Shown in pieces: positions 7,658 to 62,952 of a stretch of DNA of 64,000 nt. The stretch's first letter is position 1, and the number at the start of each line of letters is the position of its first letter. The notes under the pieces were generated by a model. That model had not been told where the DNA came from and did no database searches. It saw only the letters and a list, made by a program, of their open reading frames with translations. The position numbers and the translations under genes are program-made. The stretch is taken from positions 62,001 through 126,000 of the IMG/VR virus record IMGVR_UViG_3300017991_005548. One strand, 5' to 3'.

Positions 7658-7785
7658 ATGAGTCGGAAGGAATCGAACCTTCATTCCCTGGTTGATTTAT
7701 TAAACATCAAATAGTTGCTGGAACGAAACTTATACAGTTTCACTTGGTTTTATGTCCAGGAGTTCTACCATTAAACTACGACCCA
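7658..7785 (-). ncRNA. tRNA-like gene with CAGCAA element inside the anticodon arm
   Basis: Acceptor TGGGTCG/CGACTCA, D and T arms intact, stem CCTGG/CCAGG enclosing ~60 nt; no CCA. Confidence 0.7.
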
Positions 7786-8152: not shown

Positions 8153-8273
8153 TAGTCAGGACGGCTGGATTCGAACCAACTCCTTTAGCTCCTCAAGCTA
8201 AAATAAATATTGCTGTAGCGAACCTTATTGTCAAGTTCATGTTTATAACGTGCTACCATTACACTACGTCCTG
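8153..8273 (-). ncRNA. tRNA-like gene (C1-G72 body, GAG anticodon) with CAGCAA element between D and anticodon arms
   Basis: CAGGACG/CGTCCTG acceptor, 47-nt insert after D arm, TTAGC-TTGAGGA-GCTAA, ends A-CTA. Confidence 0.7.
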
Positions 8274-32563: not shown

Positions 32564-33997
32564 TTAGACGGTGACCCCTTCTGGGACTACGATTTCATAC
32601 TTCTCGATTGCTCGATCAAGTACTGCCATTGGCGAGAAATCAGTGCCTCCGAGAACTGCGCCTAAGATTGAAGGACTGAAGCCACTTACAAGAGCAACAT
32701 TCTCATGCGTACCTCTTGCAGGACTTCCTGCATATCCAGCAGTATTCCAATATACAATCTTTGGACGACTGTATCCATTTGCTTCCCACTCTTCCATGCA
32801 TCTTTCAATAGTGGTCTTATCGCAGTTACTAGCGCCAGAGCACCAGCCTCCACCATTATCGAACTGCATGTCTGAAATGATCAACAGACAGTTTGGAATC
32901 TGTTCATCAGTTACGTTGAACATCTTTGCAGAGTTCAGGATCTGATCAAGAGCCGCCTTGACGTTCGTTGATCCACAATATCCTTCTCTTCTGCAACGCT
33001 GAATTCCCTGAACAAAAGTCTTTCCCTTCCAATCGACAAGGTGACTGTCGTTTGAGAATGGAATGAACTTCCTGTAGAAAGGGTTATCCTTTCCAACCCT
33101 GTCAGAGCAGTACAATCCCAAACTGGTTGAGATATCAATAGCTCTGATAGAACCAGAGACAGTAACTCCCATAGATCCAGAGAAGTCACAAATTGGCATG
33201 ATTCTCATGTTGCAGTCTTCCATGAAGTTTGGAAGAGCTTCAAACTGAGCATTTGCCAACTTACCATCCTTGTTAGCAGTACGAAGAACGTCATGTGGGA
33301 ACAAAGCACTTGCGTTAACCTTGTTGTCAGAGTCCTCGTCAGTCAAAGACTCTCTCCACTGATCGTATCTTGCAGGATCATGCTTCAAGAATGCGTTAGC
33401 AGATCTTGCCATTGCGACAGAAGGAACAGTGTTGTAGTCAATGTCATGCCAGTCGCCTGAGCACATTGCAGTCTCTACAACATTAGTGTACTCAGCCAAG
33501 TGCTTTCTGAATACCTTTGGAGACATTCCGAGAGCCTTTCTAAGCTTTGCGAAAACAACCTTGTTCTTCTTCTCTCTTGGTGCCCACTTGCAAGCAAGAC
33601 CATGCTTATCAGCAATAGCTCTTGCCCAGTACTGGATTGCAGTATCTTCGCAAGGAGTATCGATACATGCAGTCAAGTCATCCCAACGTCCAGTCTCTGG
33701 AATAAGATGAATATTGACAGTAATCCACTCAGGATGCTTCTCAGCCATCCACTTCAATACAGAACGGAATCCGCTTCTGTTACCTGCTCCACCTCTAGCA
33801 TCACGAAGCCAGAAAGCAAGCTTTGCGGCACGAAGTTGATCGGACTTGAACGCAGGCTTAAACAAGTTCAGAGCACCTGCCTCCGAACCGTAGTAGCTAC
33901 CACGCTTCTCGAAAAGTGATCCTGCCTTGGAGAAGAACTCCAAAAGTGCGTTTCCAGTTGAGTCATACAGAAAGTCGTTGTTGTGTCCTCTTGCCAT
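32564..33997 (-). CDS. TROVE-like/DUF2828 family protein with vWA domain
   Basis: FWLRDARGGAG.R..FR, GRWDDL, KWAPRE, DFSGSM MIDAS, ISDMQFD, IVYWN. Confidence 0.8.
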   Translation of the reverse strand: MARGHNNDFLYDSTGNALLEFFSKAGSLFEKRGSYYGSEAGALNLFKPAFKSDQLRAAKLAFWLRDARGGAGNRSGFRSVLKWMAEKHPEWITVNIHLIPETGRWDDLTACIDTPCEDTAIQYWARAIADKHGLACKWAPREKKNKVVFAKLRKALGMSPKVFRKHLAEYTNVVETAMCSGDWHDIDYNTVPSVAMARSANAFLKHDPARYDQWRESLTDEDSDNKVNASALFPHDVLRTANKDGKLANAQFEALPNFMEDCNMRIMPICDFSGSMGVTVSGSIRAIDISTSLGLYCSDRVGKDNPFYRKFIPFSNDSHLVDWKGKTFVQGIQRCRREGYCGSTNVKAALDQILNSAKMFNVTDEQIPNCLLIISDMQFDNGGGWCSGASNCDKTTIERCMEEWEANGYSRPKIVYWNTAGYAGSPARGTHENVALVSGFSPSILGAVLGGTDFSPMAVLDRAIEKYEIVVPEGVTV

Positions 33998-37291: not shown

Positions 37292-37773
37292 GGGCGAGTA
37301 TGCAAAATAACTTGTTCGATCAACCTTTCTATGGAAGTTTCTGGCAACCTTCTCCTTTCCTTTTTATAAAGAAAATCAAGGTATCTCGTTTTTGGTGCAT
37401 TATCTGGACGACCATAAAAGAAGTTCTCAGATCCTACATGTAACCCAAATTCAACATTGGTTGTAAACGCTGGCATTGTTTTAAGTTCTCTAGGAACCCA
37501 CGCAAGTATGGCTCCAAATTCTCGACAATGCGCTAAAGCCCTATATTCCCAATAAACTTGTTTGTGATAGTCAAAGGTGTCATCACCCTCTTTTTCTCGT
37601 GGTTCAGGGACATAGAGAACTCCATCGAATTCATGCTGTTTAAAAATATCGATAGCATTTGGCCTCCATGACTGCACATCAATGCTTCTTGGAGATGGCC
37701 CGACTAAAAACACAGGTTTTGATATACCTCTGATATCCTCTTGAATTGGTTCTCTTGCATAAACTACTTTCAT
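37288..37773 (-). CDS. nucleoside 2-deoxyribosyltransferase-like protein
   Basis: VFLVGP..R...SWR; QV.WE; AWVPR...TTNVEFG. Confidence 0.75.
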   Translation of the reverse strand: MKVVYAREPIQEDIRGISKPVFLVGPSPRSIDVQSWRPNAIDIFKQHEFDGVLYVPEPREKEGDDTFDYHKQVYWEYRALAHCREFGAILAWVPRELKTMPAFTTNVEFGLHVGSENFFYGRPDNAPKTRYLDFLYKKERRRLPETSIERLIEQVILHTRP

Positions 37774-38093
37774 TGTATCTCTCCTTTATTCTTACACTCC
37801 ATGTTTTTAACAGTGAAGATTTCATATCTAATGCTAAGGATGATGTTAAACTGGCTACAAACGTCTATTAATTCTTCATCCATTGGAAAGTCAGGAATTT
37901 CTTCCCCTTCTGGCAATGCACTTATCCAATCTTCTGCTTTTTTGACCCATTCATTCGCCATATGTAAGTTTGTAAATGTTCCCACTTTCCAAGTAGTGAA
38001 GCTATTAGTACCAGAAACGGTGCCCTCAACAAGATAGACATTATTAACGTCTTCAAGATTATGGTGACTTAATAGAGTGGGTTTAATTTTCAT
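37770..38093 (-). CDS. hypothetical protein
   Basis: ORF track. Confidence 0.5.
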   Translation of the reverse strand: MKIKPTLLSHHNLEDVNNVYLVEGTVSGTNSFTTWKVGTFTNLHMANEWVKKAEDWISALPEGEEIPDFPMDEELIDVCSQFNIILSIRYEIFTVKNMECKNKGEIQ

Positions 38094-38121: not shown

Positions 38122-38327
38122 TCCAAGCTCATAGGCAGGATTCTGTTTAATATTTTCCATCATTTATCTATTGGCATCAACCCGACCATTATAGAGTAGC
38201 TCACCCTCTAGGTCTGTTTGAATTGCAACCTCGGTAGTGCAAACGAATCTCTTCTCCTACCTTAAGCTAAGTTGTCCTGACCTTCCTCTCATGAGCATTA
38301 CCTCGTAGAGCGATGGATCGGCTTGAA
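38122..38327 (-). ncRNA. rnpB: minimal RNase P RNA
   Basis: CR-I GAGGAAGGTCAGGA (38275-88), CR-IV AGATAAAT (38162-69), CR-V ACAGAATCCTGCCTA (38132-46); P4 AGGTCAGGA/TCCTGCCT, P1 TCAAGC/GCTTGG, P2 TCCATCG/TGATGGA. Confidence 0.85.
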
Positions 38328-38333
38328 AATGTT

Positions 38334-38765
38334 TTATCCTGGCCAAGGCCAAGACATAGTTAAGTGTATTGAATACATAAATCCGCCACCATCCTTAACG
38401 GCGGAATATATAAAGGGGAAAGGCTTCTTTTTAATGTCTGCGATGGCTTCCTCAAGATAAGCGATAACCTCTTCCTCAGCCTTATTATCTCCAAGTTCTT
38501 TCCGCTTTTCGTGCCAACGAATCTGATCCCTATTTGGAACAATCCGAATAAACATGTCAGCAGGAATCCTGTCCTCATTACTACAGAACTCAGTCTTAAC
38601 CCCAATTTTCTTTTCGTTGGCTTTCTTAATAAAATCTAGGATTTCTGCTTCAGTCATCTCCATAACTTCAGACATCCCAAAATCTTCTTCTGGAATGCCA
38701 AGTGACTCTAGGATATGGACATCCTCTGCAATTGCGTGAAAAACGACTTTCATTGATGGCTCCAA
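38334..38765 (-). CDS. hypothetical protein
   Basis: ORF track. Confidence 0.55.
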   Translation of the reverse strand: MEPSMKVVFHAIAEDVHILESLGIPEEDFGMSEVMEMTEAEILDFIKKANEKKIGVKTEFCSNEDRIPADMFIRIVPNRDQIRWHEKRKELGDNKAEEEVIAYLEEAIADIKKKPFPFIYSAVKDGGGFMYSIHLTMSWPWPG

Positions 38766-41428: not shown

Positions 41429-41562
41429 TGGACAAGACGGGATTCGAACCCGCAAATCGAGATGCCTCACCCATTGCTTAGGAGAAAAATAACTCCTGCC
41501 CATGGTAGCGACATTACTCTTAAGACCAGAGCCTCAACTTTGCCAATTTAAGTTACTTGCCC
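41429..41562 (-). ncRNA. tRNA-like RNA with branched ~75-nt insert replacing the anticodon loop
   Basis: GGGCAAG/CTTGTCC acceptor, D arm, T arm GCGGG-TTCGAAT-CCCGT; two inserted hairpins; no CCA. Confidence 0.65.
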
Positions 41563-41576
41563 GTCTTGTCAAATTT

Positions 41577-41698
41577 TGGCGGATGAGGTAGGATTCGAAC
41601 CTACACTGTAGCGGTTTCTGTTTTTTGGTTGCTGAAGAGAACCTTTTTGTCAAGTTCATTTTTTGGACCGCCGTCTCTGCCAGTTGGACTACTCATCC
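41577..41698 (-). ncRNA. tRNA-like gene with CAGCAA element in the anticodon loop
   Basis: GGATGAG/CTCATCC-GCCA; stem GCGGT/ACCGC encloses 51 nt. Confidence 0.75.
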
Positions 41699-42777: not shown

Positions 42778-42868
42778 TGGCAGAGGGAGTGGGACTCGAA
42801 CCCACAAACCGCATTTCTACAGCTTACATGATTTCAAATCAAGCTCTTCATCCAGCCAGATTCCCTCC
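42778..42868 (-). tRNA. tRNA-Ser(TGA), divergent
   Basis: CTTGA-TTTGAAA-TCATG, long V arm, G73 CCA. Confidence 0.75.
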
Positions 42869-42874
42869 ATTGAT

Positions 42875-60941: not shown

Positions 60942-62952
60942 TTTTTTGTCCCTCCAGTTCTTCTATGACACTGTCAATAATATCTTTGAAAAGTATCGCA
61001 ATGTTGTAGTTCTCAGGTGTTACCTGTCCTCCGACTTTATCTCTGATCATTTCGTCAATAGAGATTCCTGACTTCAGTTCGAACTTAATTTGCTCACTAT
61101 GAGCTTGTCTTTCATCCTTATCTGTAAGATACAGATACCAATACTTATCACGATCAGTGTCTTTAAGCTTTGGATCTTTATTATACTGATTTTCGTGCTC
61201 TGGATTTGTAATTGAGAACAAATTATGCGCATATTCATGAACCAGAGTAGAAGCCTGTTCCGCAGGAGAGGGCATGTCAACCGTATCAATTGCGATCAAT
61301 GGAGGATTAACAAAGATGCCCTTGGCAATCTCATATGGAGCTTCGATTTCAGACTTCTTAAACGACTCTGCGCTCATGAATCCCCCTTTGATTCCCTGAC
61401 CAAACAACATCTCAACAGGGCCAACAACAACGTTCAGATTCTCAAATGAAACTTCCCTTTCTTTAGCCAATGGCTCAAGAAGTTCACAAGCATCATAATA
61501 ATCTTTTAGATCCCTAAGATGAAAAGAGTCTCCATCTCCAATCCTGATACTTCTGGAGTTATGATCACTACGAAATTGAGGTTTATCTTTCCCCTCTGGA
61601 ACTTCAGTTTCGTTGAAGTATCTGACTTTTGCCAATTGTGTAAGACGATCTTTATCACCTTTCACCATATTGACATAAGAATGATCATCTGACTTGATGT
61701 CAATCGTATTGGTATAACGATTGTATCTCGTAATGAGTGGGATGGTTACTGGATGGAAGAACTTCCTCCAGATTTCTTCTCTAACATAGACAGGAGTCTC
61801 GATAATAACAAACTTAGTTTTGGTATTATAATCAATGACTCTGAACCATGGGATCTGTCTATCTGCACTTAATTTTCCATTTCGAATCATAGATGAAATA
61901 TTAATAGGGAATTTATCATCGGTTTTAAATGACACATAGTATGGTGTCTTCGCAGGGTTCTCATGCCCATCCTCTTCAAATGAATAAGCAATCTTCATCA
62001 ACTCATTGGCAGACCCGATAAGCTGATGGAAGTTCCCGACATTTTTAATGAAGATGTTGCTGATCTCTTCAAAGGTCCAACCAAGTTTCAAAAACCTTTT
62101 GATAGCAAAAAGAAAAGCGTCTCTATGTGCTTGTGGTGCATCTTCGGCATAATCGCCAAAAACAGAAGGGTCAAAGAAGTATTCCCGATAACCATTCAGG
62201 ATATGCCATTCCTTTTCTGGGGCTGATGGTTGAGGATCGCTACCGATATTAATTAAAATAAAGGGAGCCTTCTGAGAGAGAAGATTCTCAGGCTTATCCC
62301 GCTTACGTCCATCAATGTCTATCTCTTCATAAAAATTAATCCCTTTGGTATCATGTGGAGAGACATAGCCCCCAAGAACAGTACCTTCTCGATCATCCTG
62401 GGTTCTCATTTTTAAGTGGGGAGGGAGGGCCTTCGCAACAGATGGCATACGATTGAGATTAACCTCAATGATTGGAATCCTGTCAACGTTTTCTCCACCA
62501 AGATCTTTATGGATTAGATCCTTGATATTTTTGAAGCCATCAAGATACCGTACTCTTAAAGATGAGAAGGGCGATCCATAAATGATAGGTTCTTTTGAGT
62601 AAGTTCCAAAAGTCTCAACGACCTTATCTTTGATCTTGTCAAAGAGTTCTTCAAACTGATAGTTAGTGAAATAATCTTTGTTGATAACATAGAACCTTCC
62701 AGAGTCGATATCATAACAGACCTGTAGAAGGTGTTTGGCATCGAATCCCTTGAACTGCTCCTTAAGAAGCTCCAAGGCGGTTTTTGCATTCATGCTGACA
62801 GGAGCACGAAAAATTCTGGATTTGTGGTTTTTAGTTGGTAATGACGCAAAATAACTAACGATTTGGTTTCTTAGATTCGAGGTAGTCTGTTGCTTCGATG
62901 TCATATTCAATTCTCGCTTTGAACTCGCCCAAATTCCACGAATCTGGATCAA
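60934..62952 (-). CDS. large hypothetical protein with C-terminal HExxH zincin-like motif
   Basis: TLVHEYAH followed by downstream E..A. Confidence 0.55.
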   Translation of the reverse strand: MIQIRGIWASSKRELNMTSKQQTTSNLRNQIVSYFASLPTKNHKSRIFRAPVSMNAKTALELLKEQFKGFDAKHLLQVCYDIDSGRFYVINKDYFTNYQFEELFDKIKDKVVETFGTYSKEPIIYGSPFSSLRVRYLDGFKNIKDLIHKDLGGENVDRIPIIEVNLNRMPSVAKALPPHLKMRTQDDREGTVLGGYVSPHDTKGINFYEEIDIDGRKRDKPENLLSQKAPFILINIGSDPQPSAPEKEWHILNGYREYFFDPSVFGDYAEDAPQAHRDAFLFAIKRFLKLGWTFEEISNIFIKNVGNFHQLIGSANELMKIAYSFEEDGHENPAKTPYYVSFKTDDKFPINISSMIRNGKLSADRQIPWFRVIDYNTKTKFVIIETPVYVREEIWRKFFHPVTIPLITRYNRYTNTIDIKSDDHSYVNMVKGDKDRLTQLAKVRYFNETEVPEGKDKPQFRSDHNSRSIRIGDGDSFHLRDLKDYYDACELLEPLAKEREVSFENLNVVVGPVEMLFGQGIKGGFMSAESFKKSEIEAPYEIAKGIFVNPPLIAIDTVDMPSPAEQASTLVHEYAHNLFSITNPEHENQYNKDPKLKDTDRDKYWYLYLTDKDERQAHSEQIKFELKSGISIDEMIRDKVGGQVTPENYNIAILFKDIIDSVIEELEGQKNE

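Follow-up and report, generated by a model that had tools for sequence, protein, structure and literature searches.

On the minus strand of the analysed window (a 64,000-nt stretch of IMG/VR record IMGVR_UViG_3300017991_005548, positions 62,001 to 126,000, from a roughly 476-kb huge-phage genome) positions 38122-38327 encode a 206-nt RNA. The gene lies in a 240-nt gap between two same-strand ORFs, 38334-38765 and 37770-38093. All tRNA genes of the window are on the same strand. At Rfam gathering thresholds the window yields only tRNAs. A permissive scan, however, detected an end-to-end match (model positions 1-367) to the bacterial type A RNase P RNA, RF00010, at 38329-38116. The match scores 48.9 bits (E 5.2e-14 on a 701-nt search and E 4.7e-12 on the whole window), which is below the Rfam gathering score of 100, and RF00010 is the best-scoring Rfam model for this copy. 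The alignment contains two large deletions: about 140 model positions covering the specificity domain are replaced by about 36 nt, and the 23 positions of P18 are replaced by one nucleotide. No separate S-domain-like RNA is present elsewhere in the window. The first-pass annotation had called this a minimal, phage-encoded RNase P RNA with the specificity domain almost absent, and this is supported. Its coordinates coincide with the outer ends of P1, and every landmark it listed is present and in order. The elements of the RNA are as follows.

38122-38327 (minus): whole RNA, from the P1 5' strand to the P1 3' strand
38321-38327 (minus): P1 5' strand, UUCAAGC, pairing with GCUUGGA at 38122-38128
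38312-38317 (minus): P2 5' strand, UCCAUC, pairing with GAUGGA at 38156-38161
38288-38310 (minus): P3 hairpin
38274-38288 (minus): CR-I / J3-4 and the P4 5' strand, GAGGAAGGUCAGGAC; P4 is AGG(U)CAGGA / UCCUGCCU, with a single bulged U at 38280
38271-38274 (minus): P5 5' strand, CAAC, pairing with GUUG at 38226-38229
38266-38269 (minus): P6 pseudoknot 5' strand, UAGC in J5/7, pairing with GCUA at 38197-38200 in the P17 loop
38233-38261 (minus): stub replacing the specificity domain, with a P7-like helix GGUAG/CUACC, a GA bulge, a 3-bp hairpin and the strand GUUUGCA
38223-38226 (minus): J5/15, GCAA
38176-38222 (minus): P15-P16-P17 arm, with P15 UUC/GAU (38220-38222 with 38176-38178; only the two inner pairs form, the outer is a U-U mismatch, and UCA/UGA is possible one register over), P16 ACC/GGU (within GACC/GGUC) and P17 UAGAG/CUCUA; L15 is CGGGUU at 38179-38184, and its GGU motif, the binding site for the tRNA 3'-CCA, is at 38180-38182
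38161-38171 (minus): CR-IV / J18-2, AUAGAUAAAUG, with no P18 hairpin preceding it
38141-38146 (minus): CR-V / J2-4, ACAGAA
38133-38140 (minus): P4 3' strand, UCCUGCCU, a pseudoknot relative to P2

Single-sequence MFE folding of either strand was uninformative (z -0.94 and -0.41), as expected for an RNA whose true fold contains two pseudoknots.

Relatives of the RNA are found on many viral contigs. No close relative was found among GenBank phages at the DNA level, either by megablast of the 3-kb region or by blastn of the window RNA. Three narrow pattern scans of IMG/VR were run: the CR-I 15-mer, CR-IV plus CR-V, and CR-I plus the J5/15 GCAA at short distance. The exact 15-mer returned mostly chance hits, which were filtered by CR-IV/CR-V. 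After removal of chance and coding matches, the scans gave 43 further distinct copies on viral contigs of 4.6 to 501 kb (individual loci or contigs are given L numbers below). Two more contigs, of 296 kb and 476 kb, carry a sequence identical to that of the window. With family members as blastn queries, copies were also found in two GenBank huge-phage genomes, LR756502.1 (642,428 bp) and LR756511.1 (595,163 bp), both unannotated. Only the L070 and L127 queries reached these genomes, and blastn with L156 found nothing. The 642-kb length matches one of the four largest genomes of Al-Shayeb et al. 2020, which that paper places in the 'Mahaphage' clade with predicted Bacteroidetes hosts; the link between accession and paper is inferred. 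Two contigs filed under cellular MAGs carry short forms as well. L257 (5692-5991, 'Methanosarcinales archaeon') is near-identical to phage locus L111 and is probably a mis-binned phage contig, while L164 (3700-3941) is filed under 'uncultured bacterium'.

A covariance model built from 18 compact phage copies scores the window site (38330-38118) at 186.7 bits (E 8e-54), and no other site in the window scored above 13 bits. The relatives score 52-191 bits with spans of 190-300 nt, and the copies in LR756502.1 and LR756511.1 score 140.6 and 127.6 bits. Bona fide bacterial RNase P RNAs, mostly from Bacteroidota and fetched with the same CR-IV/CR-V pattern, score 21-61 bits with spans of about 300-400 nt. 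Their CR-I to CR-IV distance is 206-340 nt, against 96-206 nt in the viral copies and 118 nt in the window. Against RF00010, L117 (106.8 bits) and L164 (126.1 bits) pass the gathering score and L109 scores 63.5 bits; others score only about 33-36 bits against RF00373 or are not reported at all.

The structure is kept by compensatory changes. RNAalifold on the MAFFT seed alignment recovers P1, P3, P4 (with one bulged column), P5, a P7-like stub helix with an inner hairpin, P16 and P17, and 26 of its 38 pairs have compensatory double changes. In the model-based alignment of 46 sequences 94.2% of cells are paired, against 66.8 ± 0.8% in shuffles (0 of 500 reach the observed value) and 33-42% in slid registers; 31 of 38 pairs have double changes, and the covariation score is 0.637 against 0.168 in shuffles. 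That alignment is fitted to the model, but the MAFFT-based result agrees with it. All 8 P1 pairs show double changes. P3 is 93% paired and P5 100% paired, each with double changes in 3 of 4 pairs. The stub helix is 95% paired and its inner hairpin 97%, both with double changes, and P16 and P17 are 97-98% paired with double changes in all 6 pairs.

Helices that cannot be written in a nested structure alongside P4 were counted by script. In the 18 seed sequences P2 is paired in 15-18 of 18 at each of its 6 positions, with up to five standard pair types per position, and P15 (3 bp) is paired in 17-18 of 18. P2 support rests on this anchor-based count, because in the larger alignment the longer J2/4 of the window pushes its P2 3' strand into insert columns. 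The P6 pseudoknot is paired in 68 of 72 cells in the seed set against 12-37 of 72 slid, and in 120 of 135 (89%) across 45 sequences against 20-41% slid, with UA/CG and UA/CG/AU alternation. P4 is 98% paired in 45 sequences against 20-49% in slid registers; AGG/CCU alternates with ACU/GGU, AAC/GUU and others, and LR756502.1 carries a fully compensated CAAC/GUUG.

The single-stranded nucleotides that matter for catalysis and substrate contact in type A RNAs are nearly invariant. The J3/4 AA is present in 45/45 sequences and the P4 bulged U in 44/45. In the J5/15 GCAA, which by alignment to the type A consensus probably holds the A that contacts the nucleotide just 5' of the cleavage site, G, C and the last A are found in 45/45 and the third position is A in 43/45. 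The L15 GGU is kept in 41-43 of 45, CR-IV in 39-44 of 45 and CR-V in 40-45 of 45. The stub is not a neutral cap: it carries nearly invariant unpaired residues (GGAG, A and AGG), a conservation that remains unexplained.

The RNA gene is linked to tRNA genes. In more than 20 loci it abuts same-strand tRNA genes within 0-10 nt, sometimes on both sides, as in L119 (tRNA-Asn, RNA, tRNA-Pro), L117 and L153. This implies co-transcription, with release of the RNA by the tRNA-processing enzymes themselves. In the window, however, the nearest tRNA gene is 1.3 kb upstream. A promoter and terminator scan gave nothing above shuffled expectation, apart from a 10-bp G+C-rich hairpin followed by a T-rich tail at 38382-38405 (minus strand), just upstream of the 5' end of the RNA and inside the 3' end of ORF 38334-38765, which may be a terminator, attenuator or processing signal. 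tmRNA genes lie close to the RNA and the tRNA arrays on L126 (929-1353), L153 (1020-1389) and L119 (14072-14421). Suppressor-type tRNAs (anticodons CUA and UCA) on L107 (1739-1810), L110 (3246-3318) and L128 (8313-8411) suggest stop-codon recoding in some phages that carry the RNA.

The window itself holds at least 37 tRNA genes (2713-44105, minus strand) in four clusters, with many duplicated isoacceptors and spacers as short as 3-9 nt. Most are canonical (34-70 bits against RF00005), and the suggestion in the first-pass annotation that the RNA may serve unusual tRNAs which the host enzyme handles poorly is not supported. A tRNA-Sec-like match (RF01852, 38.3 bits, below its gathering score of 47) was detected at 42781-42869 (minus strand) inside the Leu/Ser tRNA cluster. 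Of the tRNA genes, 28 of 32 encode the 3'-CCA, which fits the retained L15 GGU. The family as a whole is split between phages whose tRNA genes all encode CCA and phages where none do, so encoded CCA is not a general correlate and the CCA-L15 contact cannot be the general anchor at the time of 5' cleavage. Four over-long tRNA-like genes (118-134 nt) were found on the minus strand at 7658-7785, 8156-8273 and 41580-41698 (also 41429-41562). Three share a conserved insert of about 45-57 nt in the anticodon region (a GAACUUGACAAnAAGGUUC-like hairpin followed by CAGCAA). ARAGORN calls them intron-containing tRNAs. ORF 32564-33997 encodes a 477-aa 'RNA-binding protein' (phrog_850; Pfam DUF2828/DUF7788) that may be Ro60/TROVE-like, and the long tRNA-like genes could therefore be Y-RNA-like molecules instead.

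No rnpA was found in the window or in the two GenBank huge-phage genomes. A Pfam scan of 78 window ORFs found IF3 (N- and C-terminal domains), DnaJ, a ClpB-like AAA+ ATPase, HSP20, DnaB-like helicase and primase, LAGLIDADG endonuclease-like ORFs, an ADP-ribosylglycohydrolase and a D12 adenine methyltransferase (between 619 and 62952), but no RnpA domain (PF00825), in agreement with the first-pass annotation, which saw no rnpA in the window. The ORFs flanking the RNA are not RnpA-like, and PHROGs support phage-type replication genes. This profile scan covers only 64 kb of the genome. In LR756502.1 and LR756511.1, searched only by tblastn with E. coli RnpA and with a second, Pfam-verified RnpA, nothing was found, although the same queries detect distant bacterial RnpAs in the phage collection. 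No protein family recurs next to the RNA across 47 loci.

Taken together, this is a real gene for an RNase P RNA of bacterial type A descent. It keeps the whole catalytic domain: P1-P5, the P4 and P6 pseudoknots, P15-P17 with the CCA-binding GGU loop, and CR-I, CR-IV and CR-V. The specificity domain (P8-P14, CR-II/III) and P18 are gone, and a short conserved stub is left. Most likely (probability about 0.75) it is an active ribozyme that binds the host RnpA protein and cuts the 5' leaders off the phage's own many pre-tRNAs, which would add processing capacity during infection; catalytic activity, use of host RnpA and the biological benefit are inferred, without activity or expression data. It is probably transcribed with neighbouring genes, and in most relatives it sits inside polycistronic tRNA precursors. 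Without the T-loop-binding domain, substrate binding would rest on the acceptor stem and cleavage-site contacts, the grip of the protein on the leader and, where CCA is encoded, the CCA-L15 pairing. The experimental precedent is direct: an engineered E. coli C-domain-only RNA is active, is stimulated about 190-fold by the C5 protein, depends on a P6-like pairing and does not need P18 (PMC5839562). Loss of the S-domain nevertheless costs a lot of activity in E. coli constructs. That RNA is a laboratory construct, while the phage RNA is a natural gene with the same C-domain-only architecture and also has a conserved stub with nearly invariant unpaired nucleotides.

Compared with cellular type A RNAs (E. 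coli M1 RNA; roughly 300-400 nt in the genes sampled here), the phage RNA has the same catalytic-domain helices in the same order, both pseudoknots and the same conserved strands, but it lacks the S-domain and P18, is phage-encoded and scores below the gathering threshold, and by the Rfam criterion this copy is not a member. The type T minimal RNase P RNA of Thermoproteaceae (Pyrobaculum and relatives) is likewise a natural RNA of about 200 nt that keeps the C-domain with the S-domain almost absent (PMC7191817). Type T is archaeal and cellular, however, and works with archaeal protein subunits, whereas RF00010 beats the other RNase P clan models for the window copy; the reductions look independent and convergent. 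Reduced organellar RNAs, for example fungal mitochondrial RPM1-type RNAs, have usually also lost P15-P17 and other C-domain parts and depend on large nuclear-encoded proteins, while the phage RNA keeps a complete bacterial C-domain. The only viral precedent found is the camelpox/orthopoxvirus RNase P-like RNA, which has only some secondary-structure similarity and showed no pre-tRNA processing in vitro (PMC3001073). No description of a phage-encoded RNase P RNA was found in the literature, subscription-only papers excepted, including a 2024 RNase P review, the 2020 huge-phage paper, the P Finder paper and a 2026 jumbo-phage review, although automated pipelines may already have labelled a few copies, since two family members pass the Rfam threshold.

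RNase P is regarded as a universal cellular housekeeping enzyme. If the inferred activity holds, a widespread phage family naturally lacking the specificity domain would show that the catalytic domain, with P6 and without P18, is enough in vivo, matching what deletion constructs suggested in vitro. It would also add tRNA 5' maturation to the translation functions that huge phages bring with them (tRNAs, tmRNA, IF3 and aminoacyl-tRNA synthetases), and at roughly 190-210 nt these RNAs would be compact natural ribozymes for structural and engineering work.

Other explanations are less likely. The ribozyme may work without the host protein, either as RNA alone or with an unrecognised phage-encoded partner. 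The lack of a detected RnpA in the sequences searched and the nearly invariant unpaired stub nucleotides, which suggest a specific contact with an unknown partner, are consistent with this, but no protein family recurs next to the RNA and C-domain-only RNAs need very high Mg2+ without protein (PMC5839562). This possibility is tentative. It is doubtful that the main substrates are not ordinary pre-tRNAs but tRNA-like punctuation in phage polycistronic mRNAs, tmRNA, Y-RNA-like molecules, or the RNA's own excision from tRNA arrays. The nearby tmRNA genes, the over-long tRNA-like genes and the Ro60-like ORF speak for it, and loss of the T-loop-recognition domain would probably relax specificity. 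The tightest and most frequent association is, however, with canonical tRNA genes, and since ordinary RNase P also cuts these other substrates, this reading extends the main explanation more than it competes with it. A catalytically dead or irrelevant decoy that binds host RnpA or pre-tRNAs, and so shuts down or redirects host tRNA maturation, is improbable. The protein-binding region (P2-P3, CR-IV, CR-V) is retained, no phage rnpA was found in the sequences searched, and a similar idea was raised for the camelpox RNA (PMC3001073). A decoy would not need the near-invariant P4 bulged U, J3/4 AA, J5/15 GCAA and L15 GGU or the covarying P6 pseudoknot, and the phage itself depends on tRNA processing for dozens of tRNA genes. 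A decaying fragment of a host rnpB gene is strongly disfavoured: although the RNA is truncated, scores below the Rfam threshold and in L131 appears to have lost its P1-P3 5' part, more than 45 diverged copies have the same deletion boundaries and keep every remaining helix through compensatory changes, and 45 of 47 phage copies group together.

That grouping comes from a rough tree on 153 shared columns, in which the 45 phage RNAs form one group (SH-aLRT 89) apart from the sampled bacteria. L117 pairs with a Cryomorphaceae RNase P RNA (94) and L164 with a Patescibacteria one (82), which hints at more than one capture-and-shrink event. The bacterial sample is biased, the alignment is fitted to the phage model and support is modest, so this is only a lead. 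A more far-reaching but unlikely possibility is that huge phages carry a self-sufficient minimal RNase P, the smallest natural bacterial-type RNase P RNA, working without any protein or with an unrecognised phage protein through its stub. Phage tRNA maturation would then be independent of the host, and the RNA would have arisen more than once from host rnpB genes: in the main clade, and separately in L117 from a Bacteroidota-like gene and in L164 from a Patescibacteria-like gene.

The architecture varies within the family. Some relatives (L107, L128, L140, L145, L150, L159) do have a hairpin at the position of P18. L109 (678-885) and L125 (2839-3038) have a P15 closed by a simple loop, without P16, P17 and P6, and a different stub of about 90 nt. 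In L117 (484-673, 190 nt) only about 20 nt lie between the P5 strands, and tRNA genes flank it at 0-1 nt on both sides. The copy in L137 (10626-10986) is interrupted by an AT-rich insertion of about 180 nt in the P16/P17 region, so that the model matches it in two pieces; the insertion may be an intron or a mobile insert.
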